Position numbers and translations under genes: made by a program. From Dimorphilus gyrociliatus (taxonomy: Eukaryota; Animalia; Annelida), in assembly GCA_904063045.1 (NCBI GenBank), contig CAJFCJ010000007.1, forward strand, positions 306,819 through 370,818: DNA of 64,000 nucleotides, given 5' to 3'. How positions within the stretch are numbered: the stretch's first letter is position 1; the number at the start of each line of letters is the position of its first letter. Positions 35,301-46,333 of this stretch are shown here, piece after piece. The notes beneath the pieces were generated by a model, which searched no databases, was not told the DNA's origin, and saw only the letters and a program-made list of their open reading frames with translations.

Positions 35301-36804
35301 CCAAAAGAATCAACTTCGTCAGGCACTAAAAGCTGAGGTTGAAAGCTCACTTCTTCTGAGACGAAAAATGAAACCGATTATATAAATCATCGATCTTGAA
35401 ATTACCAGATATTGTCAAGTCTCTTTAAACAGAGATGACCATTAACGACCGATAGATGGAGTTAGTGGAAGCGTCCAATTTGCCATTTCTGCAGTCCTGT
35501 CTGTTCATCAAGGTGAGTGTCATTAGAAGCACCCTTGTTTAGATTCAGCGTCTAAACTTTCAAAGAGGTCAGTACATGTGAACAAGCTTCGATGCTAAAA
35601 ATGACATTTTTTGGGGTAAAAGTGTTGAAATATATCTAAAATAGCTTAATCTTTAGTCCTTCTTGTCTTCGTGAATCACTTCCTCCCCTGTAACATACAG
35701 TATATACGCATAAAAATACTTATTTCTTTGTGGAGTTTATATAACTAAAGGAACCTTTTAGATAGAAAAGAAGGAAAGATAGGTAAGAGGGTATTAATGC
35801 CGGTCTTCGTAATTTATCAATTGCTTTTCACATATAGGTTCTGTTTAGATTACGTTTTTTCTATGCATACAGCAAAAAGAGATATTCCCCTGGGAAGACG
35901 ATCGATGAATTGCTACTTTTTACTGTTCTTTTTCTCATCCAAAATCTTTATCGAAGCTACTAAGCATCGGCATGAAAGATACAAACAAACAAGCTGGAAG
36001 CTTCGTAAAGAAAGATCTTTTACCAGTCATTAGTAAGTTAATATTAAACTATTTTTCTACATTGCTTGCTACCAATTTAAAGTATAAAAAATAGGTTAGA
36101 CAATAGTAAAATAACGTTATTTTTCTTCAAAAAAGAGAACACTAACACAATACTATGAAAATGCTAAATACAGAACATCCCATACAATCGAAAATAGTAG
36201 GAATACTAAAGTAGTAATATTCGCTATTCCCCCTTTACTGTGGGGTTTTTCATTATTCTTGTATTATGAATTATATCCGAAAAGACCTTTTTTGATGTTA
36301 GGCATGAGCAACACCTTAAACAAATGAAGCTAAAATTACATCTAACCGCATACGATTTTTATGATAATTACATTTACCTTAAATAAATAGTATATAATTA
36401 GTTTTAATTGACTTTTTCAGATAGGCTTATGTCATAACCAGTTTAGATGTAATATACTTTGAAAAACTTCATATACGGATCATGATATTTAAGCTTATAT
36501 TCTTTTTTTGATGGTTTTTGATGGACCTAGCATGTCCTTTGAAAGTACTCTTTTCTGCTGGAAGGCTTTAAATCATAAACTCTTAGGAGCTTAGAAAGGA
36601 GAAAAAAGTTTTTGAAACAATAGTTGCAGATGAGCAGTGTGACCTATAAAATTGACTTAAATATCTGATACAAGTTAGCTAATTAGCAAGCATAATACGC
36701 TATATGTTGCAGGTAATGTAGGAAGCGCAAATTTATATACTTAATATAAACATATTTTTCTTTATATTTAGTGTTAATTTAAGGTCTTTTTTTGACTTTC
36801 TTAG

Positions 36805-39317
36805 TCCATCTGGAACTCGTGAAAAGGATGATTTTTCAACACTGTCCAGTGAAAGCCGACTGATACACTATCTTCTAAATAAATATGCACAAGCTGGTAA
36901 TATGGCTCGTCCAGTCTTCAACTCTTCCAGAGCGGTTGATGTACAATTTGCGATGACTTTGGTTCAATTATTAGACTTTGACGAAACTAAACAACTGCTT
37001 ATTACTAGTGTTTGGAAGAGCTATGTAAATATATTATTAACTGCTTTAGTGTTAATTGTCTTAATACCTTTGTTTGCGTAGCAATGGATTGACGAAAACT
37101 TAAGCTGGAATCCTGCTGATTATGACGGCTTGGAAGACATCAGATTACCTCCCAGCATTACATGGACACCCGATATTGTACTTTATAATAAGTAATAATT
37201 GCGTTTTTATGCTTTAAAGATAATACTGATTAAGAGGTAGTTATTTACCCTACTCTTTGTTAATAGTGCTGATGAACAATATAACCGTGAAATTCATCAT
37301 GAATTACTTGCTGTCATGCATAATGGACTTGTAAAATGGATTCCGTCTGCCATTTATAGGTCCTCCTGTCCTGTTAACATGGCAAATTTTCCTTTTGATG
37401 TTCAAACTTGTGAGTATTTACTTGTTTAATTATCTTAAATCATAAATATTTACACAAATCTTTAATCTTTAATACCCTTCAGCGAGTAAAAAAACAGGGA
37501 CAAGTTCTAATAAATAACAGTTATAACACGATAGGGAACCATTCTCTAATAAATATTTTATAGAATTGACAAAATTTAAAGGGCAAGTTTTACAAGATTG
37601 ACTCTTTGTACTCTGAAAAATCCAATTTCTAGGGGTAATCAACTACGGATTATAAAAAAGTTGTATATTTGAATAATTAGTTTTTCAATACACAGATTAA
37701 ATTTAAGTTATTAATTTTTATTCTTGCTCAAGCCAAAGCAAAAGTTCAAAAAGCTCTATGATAAACGTTTGAAGAATCAGATATTTTGTCCTAGATTACA
37801 GACGTCATAAAAGATTCTCAGCAAGTCTAAAAATTTTCTTTGCTAAACAATTTAAAATATATAAGAAATTAGCTAAATTACATTTTAAATTAATTAGCTA
37901 ATTAGCTTATATAGTTTAGGTGAGGAGATAAGAGGGAGGGTTGGAAGAGAGAGAGGAGAAAGGTGAGGAAATAGATAGCTACAAGGAGAAAGCATGATAG
38001 AGAAGCGGAGTAAGGTTACAGAAGCAAGATAGAAATATTAGTATCGTCTTCTGGCAAAGTCGATGTCTAATTAAGAAAAAACAAACAAAATTTTAAACTG
38101 ATGTTGTTTTCTATTTCTTCTGTAGGTCATTTTAAATTCGGCTCTTGGACATACGATGGCAATAAACTAAATTTACACTTCCTCAATTCAACTGGACCCA
38201 ATATCGATTTGAGAGAGTATGTAAATAGTAGCGAATGGGATATGCTATCGTGTGAAGCGAAAAGGTCAATTCGCTACTATCCCTGCTGCGGTAAATATTA
38301 CATCACATTCTCTATTCCTTAGTGAAAATATACAAAATATTATATAAAATTAATATCGAATCAAATTATTCCAACATGGATATTGACTATTAATCCCTTG
38401 TTTTTCTTTAACATCGCACATTTTATAGGAAGCGATCCCTATCCTGAATTAATCTATTCGGTGACTGTCCGACGTAGAACTGCTTTCTATATAGTCGTTC
38501 TTATTCTACCCTGCATTCTACTTTCGTGCCTAACGGTCGTTATGTTTTGGTTTCCTCCGCAAAGGCCAGATCGAACTGGATTAGGTAGTGTAATAAAAGT
38601 TGTTTAACCAATTGAAGGAAGTTAATGAATAAAAGACTATTTTCAGGAATGAGCTTGTTTTCGAGCTTTTTCGTACTGTTGTTGATCTTGGTACAAAGTT
38701 CACCACCGACTTCAGCATCTATATCACTGTTAGGTATAATAATAGTCTTAATGTGAATAAAAAACTAACAAAATCCAAATACTCCAAACACAAGGTATAT
38801 ATTACTGCATCAATATGATACTAATCGCACTATCAACTATTTTATCCGCTGTCGTCATCAATTTAAATAAGCATAAAAATACCGAAATAGTTCTTCCTAA
38901 ATGCTTACAAACGGTAAGGCAAGAATAAAATTGAAGTAAATCTCTCACTTTCTCTTCCTTCCCATACTTTAACATGCCTCATTTATTGAACTAATTAAAC
39001 CTAACATTTCAACGTTTCTATCATTCGCCCTTAAAGCAGTCGTGGACTAAAAAATGGAAGCGTGCTAATGGTGAATTAGAGAACAATACAAAACCCTCTC
39101 CGACTATTTGTGATCAGCCACTAGATGGATCTGTAAGTGGTGTAAAAACTCAGGTTGTTCACATCAAGTAAGTTAATAAAAGATCGTAAATTCACCCATC
39201 ATGGAAAATAATTCATGTTACAGGTTAAAAACCGTTGCAACTTTTTTGGACAGAGTTTTCTTTATCGTCTATATTTTTGTAATCTTCCTTGCTGCGTTCT
39301 TCCTCTTCCCTCATTAG
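36805..39317 (+). CDS. Nicotinic acetylcholine receptor alpha-type subunit; signal-peptide exon not located
   Basis: join(<36805..37024,37082..37191,37267..37409,38126..38290,38429..38584,38647..38733,38795..38913,39037..39167,39224..39317). WTPDIVLYN, Cys-loop [23 protein letters not shown], loop C YYPCC, M1-M3, and M4 preceded by VATFLDR. Confidence 0.92.
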
Positions 39318-39446
39318 TAGATAAATCAACGATCTATTTTTATCTGACTAAACGTTGTAAAGAGTTTTACATTCAATACACCAGACTTTTTAATTATAAG
39401 GAAATACTAAATTGGTTTCTGAGAGCATACACATGAAGAGCATTTA

Positions 39447-39470
39447 ATATACAGTATATATACTGTATAT
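39447..39470. repeat. 24-bp perfect palindrome ATATACAGTATATATACTGTATAT containing TACAGTA and TACTGTA
   Basis: Directly visible; one of a dispersed set of TACAGTA/TACTGTA motifs (see findings). Confidence 0.8.
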
Positions 39471-40515
39471 ATGAGTGTAACATGACAGATTTAGGCGGTA
39501 ATAGTTTCAGACTAATATACCTTGCGTAAATAAAAGATGCAAGTTTAGGCTTCTGATACTGATTCTCATCATCGCTTCCTTCGGCTTATAAGCTGTTACG
39601 TAATCTCATCTTGGCGTGGAAATCTGATTCGCTTTCCCGTGTTTTAAAGATTCTACTAAATATCATGCTATATTAAGTTATCATTTTTGTCAAAGTTTTC
39701 GTAACTATCATACGTTTCATTCACTATACAAAACCCTAACCAATTTTAATGATATAGGCAGGATATAGAGAGAGGAGAAAGATGTAAGCAGGGTACAACT
39801 ACATTTACAATGTCAATATATTACTAGAGATTAATTCTTATAAAATTTATATCAAAAGACTCAACTGCGAACTATAATTTAGCATTAAAAAATTATAAGA
39901 TATATTTTTTATCCTTTGAATAGAACGTAAAATAGAGACAAAAGCTTCATTTATTAGCCAGTTTTACCTTCTTTTTATTTCATTCAAGTTATTGTTTAAA
40001 ATATTTGCTTCAACAATACATAAAAAACTTAATATATGTTAGTCACAAAAAAATCAAAGATAAATAACCGGTTGATTACAGCAGCAACTAATTAACATGC
40101 ACAGTTCGAATAAGGTATCGAAGCGACACCTCGCGTTTTACACATCGCCATTCGTATCGAATTGACGGTATAATATATAAATGTCCAACTCGATGACATT
40201 TCGACTTTATTTAGCTTTAGGAACGGAAGTTGGAAGATATTGGTAGATGGAAGGTTCAATATTCATTTTACTAATTATCTACATGTTATCAGTCCAATCA
40301 ATGGGGTGAGTAGCCGAGTTATTTTTACATTATGCAATCAAAACAAACGAGCGTCCTTTTCTTTTTTATTGTCTAATTTTTTATTTCGTAGGGGCAGATT
40401 TGTAATTATAGAGCATCAGTAATTTCTATATCTATAGTACAAAAAATGTCATGATTAATTAGAGTTAAACATGTCAGATCTAATTTAAAAGGGGAATTTA
40501 CACGTATTTTAAACA

Positions 40516-41553
40516 TCACGATTTCTTTCCCAGTGAGTTGTAAGACTCCTCTTTTATTGGTGGTGGAACTTTAGGTAACAGTCTTTGCTTTGGTAGCGCA
40601 TCCAGTTTGGGAGTATCATCTAGTACTCCGCTTTCGTAAGGTTGCGGATCAATAGGCCACATTTCTATAGAGTCTACTTCGGAAGCTTCACAATTCAAGT
40701 GTAAAATAGTTTCTTCTCCATTTGAATGTTTGATTCTCATACTAGTTCGACTAACGTTGGAGCTCAATGATTCCTTTGATCTAACTCTGATAATAGGTTT
40801 ACTGGTATCGCCATTGACTCTCTGCTGATCATTTAGATGCGTGTTTTCACTAAAGTCAGAGTCATTTCTTCTTCTCCTAAAAAGCAAATATCTACTGAAT
40901 AGGGATCATCATTTTACTAAATAACGCCTAACCTTTTGAGATATATAACACCAAATATGACAGCTAATACGATGACCAAAAGCGTAATGACGCATATTAC
41001 GATAATAGTAACTATTTTAAAGGAAAATTAAATTATTATATTCCACGTAATTCATAAAGAATATTAAAAAATGTATTACTCATTTTTCTGCTACTCTTCC
41101 CATCAGTTTTACCATCGGTTGGTATAATAATAGTTGTTGTTTTATCAGGATTCTTGCTATAATATTTAGGTAGCAAACTAATAGGATCTTCAGATATTTC
41201 CCTCAAAGATGGTGAGCTAAGTATCCTTTCAACTGTAATAGACCCATAAAGCCATTCGCATCCGACCAACATTATAGTAACGTTGTTTTGAGTGCTATTT
41301 TTCAGTTCTACATTCCCAAATATAGCATCGTTTCTCTTAGAAAATAAGATTTTTATCTGCTGTCCATTTAATGTGCCATATTTGCAATTTTGATTGAAAC
41401 CCAAGCCAGATTTCAAGTGAACTTTTATACTTAAGCGAATATGATTAAGTTTAAATTTTAGACATACAGAAGAGATGTTAACTTTCGGTACTATATTATA
41501 TGTTCCTTCATTTATATCAAAACACGGTAAATCCTCTCTTTCTAAAACCTTGG
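40516..41553 (-). CDS. Orphan single-pass (type I-like) membrane protein; 5' exon not located
   Basis: complement(join(40516..40891,40933..41011,41113..>41553)), frame-consistent, ~297 aa. Ectodomain of ~145 aa with N-glycosylation sequons (NIS, NST, NVT); hydrophobic exon TIIVICVITLLVIVLAVIFGVIYL followed by a basic stop-transfer segment; ~125-aa Ser/Pro-rich tail. Confidence 0.75.
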
Positions 41554-43608
41554 CTGTAAAATAGAAAAGAAAAAAAAAACGTATGAAAAGGGAACTAATA
41601 GAGACATACGGTAAATTAAATGGTAATAGATAGCAGATAAGAAAGAGTAGGAGAAATGAACTAAAAGTAGGACTAGATGTTTAACTAGAGTATAAAAAAT
41701 AATTTTACTTTAGTTGACATAGTTATTTTGCTTTGCTCATTTGAAAAACATTGACAACCTCGCCTAAGGAGAGAGTGTAACTATTGAGCAAACTAGAAAG
41801 AAGAAAGAATATAGATATATATCCAAGAAAGGAAACCTTACAAGCTTACATATGCGTCTAGTGTACCGTATGCAAACAATATCCTCGTTAATATGACTAT
41901 TATTTTTTGATCGATGATGCTAGTTCGATTGCAAACGATATTCTCTCGCCGTCTTCCCCCCATTTTATATTATTAGTAAAACCTATGTATTAGACGTAAA
42001 TTATAGCTGATGTGGAAAAAATCATTTAGGTACGGGGTTATATACTATGTTGACCAGACGTAGAACTCTAAGCTTATATACATATAAAATATTTATATAT
42101 TTACAATAAACTGTAAATATATATGTTTAAATACAAAATCATCACGTTTTTCAAAAGTCTGAGTTGGTAATTTTTACTTTATAAAACTACAACAAGCCAA
42201 AATAGTTAATGTATAAAAATCAAATAATAGATATTTATATTAAATTTCAATAGAAAATTTACACCTTAGAAAATTTAATTGTACCGGAAATTTGAAAAGG
42301 AACATGCATGATTTAGAGCTAAATTTTTTAAATGTACAAACCTTTAAGACATATATATTGGTAATAAATATAGCTGTGTAATAAATGCTGAGGTCTACTA
42401 ACGCCTGGGCAATCTTCTTTTTCAACCAATTTTATTTGGCATATTTTTCGACCTGTACAAGATCTTCTTAGATTATCTGCAATTAAGAGGGAAAAATAGA
42501 ATAAATGAATAATTTAAAGAGAAGAATAAGAATATTATAAATAATTTATATGTTAAACAATAATATTAATTAATTATATTTGTCTATATATTTATATATA
42601 TATATATATATCTTTATATATTAATATATTGATACACTAATGTGATACATATATATATATAATTTACACTATTTTTTCTAAACTTACTGTATTTAGTAGA
42701 TATACAACTATTCTCTTGTTTGTTATTAATTATATCCCGGAAGGATTCCAAAAGATCCTCTCTTGTCCTACTTTCGCATAACTTCTTTTGACCATCATAT
42801 ACAAATTTACTATCTTTTATAATAATTACCTCACCATCATTCTTACATTCTATAGTAGTAGTGGGAGGTGGACAGCATGTAAAGCAATCTATAATTTGTA
42901 GAACTATAATATATTATTACGAATAAATAAATCGTTACTTACCACTATCCATACTACATTCATTCTTATCGTCACAACTAACTACATTCCATAAACACAA
43001 AGTAAAGGTAATTATTAAATTCCTTGTTAGAAGCATTATCATGTACTTTTCACTCTCTTAAAATACAATAAAAAACCTAAATATTTTCAATTAAGAAGAT
43101 AAAACCATTGTACAAATAAGTTAAGCCATTTTCAGCAGTATGGCTGTATGCATACGATTCTTTATGTCTCTTGACTTTTCTGGATTTTTTATGAAATTTC
43201 AGTTTATGTTTTCTTTATTTGAGACCTTTTTGACTATTATTTCTACAGTTGAGTTCTTTTTCTAAATAAAAACAGGCCTCGACGCTTATCACTAATATTA
43301 ACGCACATTTCTTTTGTTATGATAAATACAACCGTACAATACTATTGCTACATAGGCCTAATGATTTTCGATGCAAAATTCGTTTCAGAAAATGTTTTCC
43401 CTTTTAGTTTTATAGATTTACGAGGAAATACCTCCTTTTTCACATCAATTGTGTATTTTAACCACGAATTTGGGGTAGTTAAGGGGATTTAGATCTTATT
43501 AACTTCTATCTGAAAGAAAAGGTGCTCCCAATTCCCTTTATGCATCTTTCCTCTTTAACCGTTTTGATTATTTGCCTTTAAGTAATGCACCATTGGATTT
43601 TTTTCCAG

Positions 43609-46333
43609 CTATAGTCCTTATTCCACCGCTTGTCAGAGATCGCCGGATGATCATCAAATATCGGAAGAGAGTCGGCTAATTAAATGCTTAGAAAAACGCT
43701 ATCAGAAAGTTACTACTCTTGCAAGGCCAGTTCAATCGTCGAAAGCAAGCGTAGTTGTACACTTTGGATTATCGCTAATTCAAATATTGGACTTTGATGA
43801 AAAGAAACAAATTATAACAACTAGTATATGGAAGAATTACGTTTGGAGGGATCAAGTTCTTTCATGGAACCCGATCGACTTTGGTGGCGTTGAGCACATC
43901 AGACTAAAAGCATCTAGTTTATGGTCACCGGATATTGTTCTCTATAATAAGTTAGTTCTATTAATTTTAAAAGTATATTTTGCTACAACACCTTATATCC
44001 TTTAGTTTAACAAAATTAAAACCGAATAAGGTCAATTCCATTTTGATTACAAATTATATTTAATACTTAAGACGTTTTATAACATTCTAACAACCAATAC
44101 ACAAGTACAAAGATTCTATCTAGAATAGCGGTTTTTTTATTAAGTTATACGTAGTATTCTACTTTAATACACAAATTATCAGACTTTACTTAGGAAAAAA
44201 GATTTGAGAACTTTATTTAAAAGAAGACTACAGAATTTACGTTTCTTTCAAGAGTAAAGAGACTAAAAGGGCAAAAGAAAAAAGGATTAGTCTTCTTGAA
44301 AAGGAACAAAATTTAGAATCCTCACTTTCTTTTAATAGCGTTCTTTTTTATTTTTATACGATTCTCTGCTTAAATTCTCTGCTGAGACGTCAGTAAAATT
44401 AACTAATTTACACCTATAGATTATCATATACAATATATTCTATCAAGTAAATCAACCTAAATATATTGGAATATACTAATATGTATACGTATATAAAGAG
44501 CTTCTTGGTCATTTTATCCATCATTGATTTCTTTATAAATCTAATTCCAATAGAAGAAAAGGTAGAGAAGCGTAGCTTAGCTTGATTCATCTTTTTCTAA
44601 TAGGAAGAGGAGAAAGTAAAATAAAATTCTAGATTATAGTCTTGGGTTTCATGCGAATCATTTAAAATTCTTTTCTCCTCTTTGTCTAGTGCCGACGAGC
44701 AAATTAAAGAGCATGAAGAACTAGTGGCCGTTTACTTCAATGGAACTGTCAAATGGATTCCGCCTGCCATCTTTAGGTCTTCCTGTGAGATTGATATGCG
44801 AAATTTTCCTTTCGATGAGCAGGTTCAGAAATTTGACTCGGAAGGAAAGATATAGATTCCTAATTAAATAATTATCCTCTTTTTATTCCAGATTTGCGAG
44901 TTTAAGTTTGGATCATGGACTTTTGATGAAAATAAATTAGATCTTCGCTTGTCTAATGACACAGATAAAATAGACCTAAGGGAATATGTTCACAGTTCTG
45001 AATGGGAGGTTTCATGGACGTCTGCCAAACGACAGGTATTATTTTCATTGTTGTTTAGCTTTAATGAACAATAGTAGCAATAAGAATCATACACGTACTG
45101 TATTTAATTAATCGTGTTTCAAGAACTTAACACAATGATCAATTCATAAATGTATAACAAAGTTTACTTAGTTTTCTTTGAGTTTAATGACCTACTTAAA
45201 GCAAAAATTATGCTAGCTACAAAACTGTTAAATGTAAAGATAAAACTATTCAAGGTGGAGATTAGCAAGGATTATTGTATTCTTGAATATTACTGGTTAA
45301 TTTTCATAAAAGAATTACAATCTTCCTTATACTGTATAAAAACTTTTAATCGCTTTATCTAAAATTCCCATCTATGCATAATATCGAAAGCACATTACAC
45401 TTTTTCAGATTCGTAAATATCAGTTCTTTGATGACGATCCCTACCCCGAACTCATATTTACCTTAAAAATAAGACGTCAATCAACATTTTACGTTCTTCT
45501 GCTGGTTCTACCCTGTGTGCTTTTATCATGTTTAACATTAGTTCTCTTTTGGATTCCTGCTAACAGACCAGATAGAACTGCAGTAGGTTAGTTACTAATT
45601 GTTCTTACCTTTTGATTAATTGCTTCTTCAAGATATAATTTCTATGTATAGGTATGAGCGTTTTCTCATCATTTTTCATCTTACTTCTTATTCTTGTTCA
45701 ATCATCTCCACCTACATCAGCTTCAATTTCATTACTTGGTTAGTATTACACGGATATTTGTAAGCATTTTATGAAATTAAAATTGATTTTCACTTAATAG
45801 GCATTTATTTTTGTATAAATATGGTTCTTATTGCTCTCTCTACAATTTTATCTGTGATCGTCATTAACCTAAGACGTAGGGCGTTCTCTCATTATGCTCC
45901 CAAATGGTTACTCTCGGTTGGTTATTTTTTTCCATACTTATTCTATTATACAAATCATAGTAATCACATTAAACGATATTAGGAAAAGCTCGATATAATT
46001 GCACGATTACTTTTGGCATCTGACGTTTTGAGTATTGTACCAAATTCCCCGAGATCATCCAAGTGTAAGTTAAGAAGACTCGGATCAAAACGAGCGAGCA
46101 AAATAAACGAGAAGCATAATTTAGAAACTTCGGACGATAGCGATGATCAGTATGAGAATGCTGATTTGTATGGCGAAGACACTGAAAGAGAGGATTCAGC
46201 TAAATGTTCTTGTTTGAAGAAGAAAATAGCCAGAAGATGGTTACTCGTTTCGTCAATTCTCGATAGAATTTTCTTTGTAACCTATTTCTGTACGATTTTA
46301 CTTGCTTTAGCTTTTGTGTTTCCTCGGAATTGA
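43609..46333 (+). CDS. Nicotinic acetylcholine receptor-like non-alpha subunit, paralog of the upstream gene; signal-peptide exon not located
   Basis: join(<43609..43950,44690..44822,44892..45035,45409..45586,45652..45738,45801..45916,45983..46333). WSPDIVLYN, Cys-loop [23 protein letters not shown], loop [13 protein letters not shown] (no vicinal CC), M4 preceded by [10 protein letters not shown]. Confidence 0.92.

Follow-up and report, generated by a model that had tools for sequence, protein, structure and literature searches.

A tandem pair of nicotinic-type channel subunit genes in the annelid Dimorphilus gyrociliatus with a conserved P-D-R, Ser 9' pore

Two subunit genes with the same pore

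We analyzed a 64,000-nt stretch of AT-rich animal DNA (32% GC; hereafter the window) from the minute marine annelid Dimorphilus gyrociliatus (assembly GCA_904063045.1, contig CAJFCJ010000007.1, positions 306,819 to 370,818 of the forward strand). The window contains a tandem pair of intact genes for subunits of nicotinic-type pentameric ligand-gated channels, here called gene 1 (DgyrCDS5676) and gene 2 (DgyrCDS5680), with expression shown for gene 1 only. In both of them, the second transmembrane segment (M2) and its inner mouth combine Pro-Asp-Arg (P-D-R) at -2'/-1'/0' with Ser at 9' and Gln at 20'. This M2 is found again in paralogs and orthologs, and the likeness of the two genes is thus due to common ancestry and not to chance. 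Judging from the sequence comparisons below, the P-D-R and Ser 9' pore is a conserved hallmark of an annelid-conserved subfamily, which represents an uncharacterised pore variant of the nicotinic-type channel family. The exons of both genes were derived from open frames and splice signals, and homology searches were carried out with single exons or with public gene models.

Residues and numbering of the pore

Gene 1 reads CCA GAT CGA (P-D-R) at 38566-38574 and TCG (Ser 9') at 38661-38663, and gene 2 reads CCA GAT AGA (P-D-R) at 45568-45576 and TCA (Ser 9') at 45666-45668. The codons of Gln 20' lie at 38694-38696 and 45699-45701, respectively. An earlier sequence-only reading of this DNA had reported the P-D-R triplets, the two serines and a Gln instead of Glu at 20'; the coordinates that it gave for the triplets and the serines proved exact to the base, and the codons bear out the Gln in both genes. 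In addition, both genes have Arg at -3' and a neutral residue at -4' (Gln in gene 1 and Asn in gene 2). In each gene, M2 is interrupted at the Gly 4' codon by a phase-1 intron that follows the codon's first base (38585-38646 and 45587-45651), so the reading of M2 depends on that splice. In gene 1, this joint (38584>38647) belongs to a set of 8/8 tested introns that are spliced with GT..AG and zero base differences in RNA contigs of the public run X1, and in gene 2 the M2 splice agrees with the public model P0156.

The prime numbering was examined by several routes, and none of them revealed a register shift that would bring a hydrophobic residue to 9'. When the M1-M2 exon of gene 1 was compared with the Protein Data Bank (PDB) by phmmer, the alpha7 nicotinic subunit aligned without a gap, with P-D opposite the G-E of G-E-K. 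MAFFT alignments of 44 and 62 subunits contained zero gaps between the M1 proline and the P-x-T-S that follows M2, apart from an insert in one read-through fragment. As the alignments have no insertion or deletion here, the serine falls in the L9' column and the Gln in the E20' column. In the AlphaFold model of gene 2 (predicted local distance difference test score, pLDDT, 81), the transmembrane helices span residues 83-105, 112-134, 140-172 and 242-296, and the M2 helix (112-134) corresponds to -1' to 21'. A structure search with this model recovered 5-HT3A and nicotinic acetylcholine receptor (nAChR) structures at Z 17-18; it yields ranges rather than residue pairs, and it confirms the fold and adds little to the numbering. 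The 28-residue M2 exon of gene 1 found no PDB chain at E<=10, a result that indicates divergence only.

Both genes depart from the canonical filter, G-E-K/R with acidic rings at -4' and 20', of which they retain only the acidic residue at -1' (Asp) and the basic one at 0'. The hydrophobic Leu or Ile of 9' is replaced by Ser in each; among the 47 G-E-K/R subunits retrieved, 9' is Leu in 29, Ile in 15, Thr in two and Val in one. Canonical nAChRs such as alpha7 and alpha4beta2 share with the window genes the Pfam domains, the Cys-loop, the aromatic box, the length of the M1-M2 loop, the acidic -1' and the basic 0', but in the window genes Gly -2' has become Pro, Glu -1' has become Asp, Leu 9' has become Ser, and the outer acidic rings at -4' and 20' have been lost. 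A Pro-Ala motif in place of the -1' acid is, according to PMC4055736, a mark of nicotinic-type channels gated by acetylcholine (ACh) that conduct chloride. The window genes have the proline of this motif, with Asp rather than Ala at -1'.

Distribution among annelids

We searched 1.84 billion representative sequences with the M1-M2 exon and then carried out word-indexed searches with P0097, P0151 and a nine-member profile. The Q-R-P-D-R pore with Ser 9' and Gln 20' was also found in Paralvinella palmiformis (P0152 and P0204), Capitella teleta (P0153) and several metagenome proteins, and six named annelid proteins carry the motif. From -3' to 20', M2 is identical except at 2' in gene 1, the third D. 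gyrociliatus paralog DgyrCDS12454 (P0151), P0152 and P0153, despite a whole-protein identity to DgyrCDS12454 of only about 62-71%. On a metagenome contig, an ortholog of the gene 2 type likewise has this M2, interrupted by an intron at the identical point of the Gly 4' codon, after its first base. The named top matches of the subfamily profile are all annelid; below them comes a drop in score from 604 bits to the 525 bits at which the Pro-Ala group starts. This restriction to annelids holds among the named matches, the metagenome relatives (from ENA and JGI) carrying no taxon, and the word-indexed search scores only 8000 word-sharing candidates, which is no proof that other taxa lack the subfamily.

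No functional or structural study of the P-D-R subfamily was found in the literature on annelid (including Platynereis) nicotinic or ACh-gated chloride channels, and pore residues were not analysed in Jiao 2019. The window genes fall in no characterised clade, in line with the earlier suggestion of an uncharacterised receptor subtype, for which distinctive gating is a putative trait. That interpretation was sound as to the pore motif itself and the lack of a characterised clade, and it had missed the alpha/non-alpha split described below, the neutral -4', the Arg at -3' and the presence of about eleven P-D-R-type genes in the genome.

Phylogenetic position

The main tree was a careful maximum likelihood analysis of 44 rows under LG+C20+F+G4, with quick trees run alongside. 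It contains a superclade of sequences with Pro at -2' (support 100/100), within which the P-D-R clade is recovered with 100/96. A Pro-Ala clade (87/79) comprises sequences of Lymnaea, Biomphalaria 'type B', Octopus, Lingula, Lineus, flatworm, rotifer and annelids. The tree thus places the window genes beside the Pro-Ala (ACh-gated chloride channel) group and not inside it. Within the P-D-R clade, gene 1 and Paralvinella P0204 form a pair (99/95) with gene 2 as the next branch (98/88), and DgyrCDS12454 groups with Paralvinella P0152 and Capitella P0153 (95/90). By these groupings, the alpha/non-alpha split and the two alpha types are older than the divergence of these annelid families.

The Pro-Ala group, which includes Lymnaea type B and Schistosoma SmACC-1, resembles the window genes in belonging to the same superclade, in Pro -2' and in F8'/[A,S]10'/F11'/F12'; like the P-D-R subfamily, it mostly lacks Leu 9' and includes alpha-type domains with Y-x-C-C. 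It differs from the window genes in having Ala instead of Asp at -1', Lys instead of Arg at 0', Ser instead of Arg at -3', acidic residues at -4' and 20' instead of Gln/Asn and Gln, and mostly Val instead of Ser at 9'. The view that 9' is normally Leu, from which the sequence-only reading started, is correct for canonical subunits but does not extend to the sister Pro-Ala group, where Val predominates and Met, Ile, Leu, Thr and Ser also occur. Since this group mostly lacks Leu 9', the leucine was probably given up before the P-D-R subfamily arose, and Ser 9' appears to be a further step in a lineage in which 8'-12' had already been rebuilt as F-x-[A/S]-F-F.

A Pro-Ala subgroup comprising P0250 (Brachionus plicatilis), P0240, P0263 and P0276 combines a polar 9' (Thr or Ser) with Lys at 20', and polar 9' residues have therefore arisen more than once in the Pro(-2') superclade.

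Related genes in the D. gyrociliatus genome

A whole-genome search detected about 48 nicotinic-type M1-M2 exons. In about eleven D. gyrociliatus genes, an acidic -1' follows Pro, Ala or Thr at -2', 8' is Phe, 9' is Ser or Ala, and 10' is Ser. This P-D-R-type set consists of the two window genes, DgyrCDS12454 on contig C20, one gene on C3, three on C4, one on C12, two on C19 and one on C25. Those on C3, C4, C12, C19 and C25 (the last with A-D-R) retain Glu at 20'. Like the window genes, these E20' paralogs have Asp -1', Arg or Lys at 0', F8', Ser or Ala at 9' and S10', and in most of them an M2 intron lies at 4'. With M2 in the alignment, they and the window genes make up a single clade (100/96), a grouping that is unresolved without the M2 columns. 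Unlike the window genes, they keep the acidic residues at -4' and 20', several have Ala 9', and they are far more divergent outside the pore.

Four other genes have a P-A-K or S-A-K filter (two on C8 and two on C5). They are alpha-type and form two pairs (loci L009-L012; G000:C8:1259400-1266900 and C5:4061100-4064200), representing candidate subunits of ACh-gated chloride channels, and at least some of them share the M2 intron at 4' with the window genes. The other M1-M2 exons that were read have G-E-K/R and nearly all have Leu 9', with one Asn 9'. The latter belongs to a nicotinic-type gene (locus L017; G000:C2:3452250-3452850, minus strand) with an ordinary G-E-K filter and Asn at both 9' and 12' of M2.

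Ligand-binding domain

Four exons of gene 1 scored above the cut-off for PF02931, and its M1 exon reached 26 bits with PF02932 (the cut-off being 28.1, for that fragment alone). Both Neur_chan_LBD and Neur_chan_memb are present in the public models P0238, P0156 and P0151. A C-x13-C Cys-loop can be read in both genes, and the M1-M4 exons of gene 1 are joined in RNA. In gene 1, loop C ends with Y-P-C-C and thus has the vicinal cysteines of alpha-type subunits, and alignment with vertebrate alpha2 and alpha4b reveals a complete aromatic box (loop D Trp, loop A Tyr, loop B Trp and two loop C Tyr). Together, these residues identify gene 1 as an alpha-type subunit with a full ACh aromatic box. Gene 2 keeps all five aromatic-box residues without the cysteines; its loop C reads Y-Q-F-F in place of Y-x-C-C, which makes it non-alpha. 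By these residues, the locus is an alpha/non-alpha tandem.

Charge selectivity and gating

We consider it about an even chance that the two genes encode ACh-gated, weakly cation-selective channels whose gate has moved outward. The subunits would assemble into ACh-gated channels, probably as alpha/non-alpha heteromers and possibly together with DgyrCDS12454. If the standard positions apply, the pore would be lined by Pro -2', Asp -1', Gly/Ser/Ala 2', Ser 6', Ser 9', Val/Ile 13', Leu 16' and Gln 20'. Asp -1' would form the sole acidic ring, lying behind Pro -2' and flanked by Arg -3' and Arg 0', with neutral residues at -4' (Gln/Asn) and 20' (Gln), and the pore may be expected to be weakly cation-selective, of low conductance and of low Ca2+ permeability. 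With Ser at both 6' and 9', the hydrophobic barrier would be confined to 13'-17' (Val/Ile, Leu, Leu, Leu, Ile). In that case, the activation gate would sit further out, and agonist sensitivity would be higher and desensitisation slower than in L9' receptors.

Nicotinic mutants of the L9'S and L9'T type resemble the window genes in having a polar 9' residue. Unlike in these mutants, Ser 9' is the native residue of the window genes, shared by all subunit types of the subfamily and maintained among annelids. Such mutants are reportedly hypersensitive, according to work ascribed to Revah in 1991 and Labarca in 1995. Slower desensitisation has been described for an L9'T nicotinic mutant (PMC10338036).

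With regard to charge, Asp -1' is invariant in every P-D-R-type gene seen, and -2' varies among Pro, Ala and Thr. The E20' paralogs retain three acidic rings (D/E -4', D -1' and E 20'), and the Pro-Ala group has acidic residues at -4' and 20', the acid at -1' being the only one missing. The A-1'E mutant of the glycine receptor (GlyR) alpha1 subunit, in which the filter reads P-E-R, is cation-selective with a PCl/PNa of 0.34 (Keramidas et al. 2002, PMC2233820). It shares Pro-acid-Arg at -2'/-1'/0' with the window genes. It differs from them in being an engineered variant of an anion-conducting receptor, in having Glu in place of Asp and Leu at 9', and in an M1-M2 loop that is one residue longer. 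The invariant Asp, the rings of the E20' paralogs, the Pro-Ala pattern and the GlyR mutant together favour cation selectivity set by the Asp ring. Selectivity is thus not wholly unpredictable, contrary to what had been stated from the sequence alone; anion or mixed permeability is a less probable alternative.

Several points weigh against weak cation selectivity with an outward gate. With Arg, Asp and Arg at the inner mouth, each subunit has a net charge of +1 there, and an acidic 20' ring is missing. The arginines on either side could neutralise Asp, which is a shorter residue than Glu. With the columns of the M1-M2 loop and M2 left out of the alignment, the two P-D-R subgroups and the Pro-Ala group formed an unresolved trichotomy; the superclade still had a support of 100, and the window genes still fell outside the Pro-Ala clade (80). 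The closest characterised relatives, Pro-Ala subunits of Lymnaea and Schistosoma, are reported as chloride channels (PMC4055736). Moreover, several annelid nAChR-like proteins, among them Alpo1, Alpo2 and Alpo4 of Alvinella, gave no current with any ligand tried (PMC4801368), Alpo2 being at most a possible member of the P-D-R subfamily. Both cation selectivity and gating are properties that we infer for every member of the subfamily.

It seems rather unlikely to us that the channels are anion-selective like the sister group. In such channels, Pro -2', Arg -3' and Arg 0' would create a positive mouth, Asp -1' would be salt-bridged and electrically silent, and the loss of the acidic -4' and 20' rings would be a further step to chloride conduction. 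The 100/100 superclade and the M2 scaffold held in common with the Pro-Ala group (Pro -2', F8', A/S10', F11' and F12') are consistent with this, as are the net positive inner mouth, the neutral -4' and 20' of the window subfamily and the chloride channels reported among Pro-Ala subunits. However, the acid at -1' is invariant while the proline varies, which argues that the acid is functional. The M1-M2 loop also has the cation-type length by residue count on the alpha7 alignment, without the extra residue present in the loops of GlyR and GABA-A receptors. Furthermore, a single acidic -1' was enough to make GlyR cation-selective despite Pro -2' and Arg 0' (PMC2233820).

A little less probable again is that the subunits do not form ACh-gated conducting channels alone, but act as orphan receptors for another ligand, as obligate accessory subunits that tune other nAChRs, or as constitutively leaky channels. 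Many lophotrochozoan nAChR-like proteins are orphans (PMC10338036, PMC4801368), loop C of the subfamily is one residue longer than in the Pro-Ala group and in vertebrate alpha2/alpha4, and a polar 9' could cause spontaneous opening. On the other hand, gene 1 and its orthologs keep the full aromatic box and the vicinal cysteines, the pairing of alpha and non-alpha subunits resembles ordinary heteromeric nAChRs, and the invariant M2 argues for selection on the pore itself. There is a very small probability that the motif is an artefact, arising from an incorrectly chosen frame or splice site, from a pseudogene or from faulty assembly, even with both public models incomplete (P0238 ends after M2, and P0156 lacks the N-terminus): the RNA contigs match 8/8 tested gene 1 joints with no differences, the exon frames are open with zero stops, and the same M2 occurs in three D. 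gyrociliatus genes and in other annelid genomes. This reading was rejected on the RNA evidence for gene 1 and on conservation.

A possible evolutionary intermediate

The P-D-R subfamily may tentatively be viewed as a surviving intermediate between cation-selective nicotinic receptors and ACh-gated chloride channels, in which Pro -2' and the loss of Leu 9' came first and the loss of the -1' acid later, a scenario that we regard as possible and rather doubtful. If it is true, there would be natural channels that gate without a hydrophobic plug at 9', and selectivity would rest on a single Asp ring, being possibly weak or switchable by the mix of subunits. Charge selectivity and the 9' leucine gate are the two best-studied features of pentameric pores, and almost all knowledge of them comes from mutants. 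The P-D-R subfamily offers a natural and strongly conserved combination of a Pro-acid-Arg filter, a polar 9' and no outer charged rings, and it adjoins the only known nicotinic-type chloride channels. It raises the questions of whether a lone Asp ring behind a proline can serve as a cation filter, where the gate lies when 9' is Ser, and in which order the changes that created cholinergic inhibition in spiralians occurred, and it bears on ACh signalling in annelid nervous systems. Its value lies in being directly testable by expression.

Gene structures and the locus

The exons of the two genes are listed in Table 1. For gene 1, the joints 37024>37082, 37191>37267 and 37409>38126 are GT..AG in X1 contigs. 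One X1 contig extends 162 nt upstream of 36805, and its final 30 nt correspond to 36003-36032, directly followed by a GTAAGT donor. The public model P0238 reads through the intron past the donor after M2 and then ends, and M3, the cytoplasmic loop and M4 are missing from it though they are joined in RNA. The model P0156 of gene 2 begins inside the Cys-loop exon and lacks upstream ligand-binding-domain exons (43609-44822). The signal-peptide exon of gene 2 was not located, its first recognisable exon being 43609..43950.

Table 1. Exons of the two receptor subunit genes, in window positions
Feature	Position	Strand	Evidence
Gene 1, exon 1: ATG at 35905, hydrophobic N-terminus resembling a signal peptide	35905..36032	+	X1 RNA contig
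Gene 1, ligand-binding-domain exons: loop D Trp, loop A Tyr, first Cys-loop Cys	36805-37024, 37082-37191, 37267-37409	+	PF02931 on each; RNA joints
Gene 1, exon with second Cys-loop Cys, loop B Trp and loop C ending in Y-P-C-C (alpha type)	38126..38290	+	Frame reading, Pfam, alignment; RNA joint 38290>38429
Gene 1, exon with M1 and M1-M2 loop up to 4', Q-R-P-D-R (P-D-R 38566-38574)	38429..38584	+	Codons, Pfam, alpha7 alignment
Gene 1, M2 exon from 4' to the M2-M3 loop (Ser 9' 38661-38663, Gln 20' 38694-38696)	38647..38733	+	Codons; RNA joint 38584>38647
Gene 1, M3 exon (38795-38913), short cytoplasmic-loop exon (39037-39167), exon with M4 and stop (39224-39317)	38795..39317	+	RNA joints 38733>38795, 38913>39037, 39167>39224
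Gene 2, first recognisable ligand-binding-domain exon: loop D Trp, loop A Tyr	43609..43950	+	Frame reading, alignment; missing from P0156
Gene 2, exons with Cys-loop and loop B Trp	44690-44822, 44892-45035	+	Frame reading; start of P0156 lies within 44690-44822
Gene 2, exon with loop C Y-Q-F-F (no vicinal Cys, non-alpha), M1 and N-R-P-D-R (P-D-R 45568-45576)	45409..45586	+	Codons, P0156, alignment
Gene 2, M2 exon (Ser 9' 45666-45668, Gln 20' 45699-45701)	45652..45738	+	Codons, P0156
Gene 2, M3 exon (45801-45916) and last exon with cytoplasmic loop, M4 and stop (45983-46333)	45801..46333	+	Frame reading, P0156, four transmembrane helices in AlphaFold model

With respect to the tandem arrangement in other genomes, the Paralvinella ortholog sits at a contig end, and the metagenome contig has no second receptor gene in the flanks fetched. 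Between the two receptor genes, there are minus-strand open frames at 40516-40887 and 41036-41416 (123 and 126 aa) with zero Pfam matches.

An unspliced X1 contig in minus orientation, with a depth of 15.9 compared to 57-71, was mapped to intron 3 of gene 1 (37483-38155) and could represent a retained intron, an antisense transcript or an intronic transcript. Intron positions also differ between the paralogs (37025-37081, 37410-38125 and 38291-38428 in gene 1; 44823-44891 and 45036-45408 in gene 2). Gene 2 lacks the intron that gene 1 has after W-K-x-Y, the Cys-loop intron of gene 2 lies 4 nt upstream in phase 0 while that of gene 1 falls within the Cys codon, and the loop C intron is nine codons earlier in gene 2 than in gene 1.

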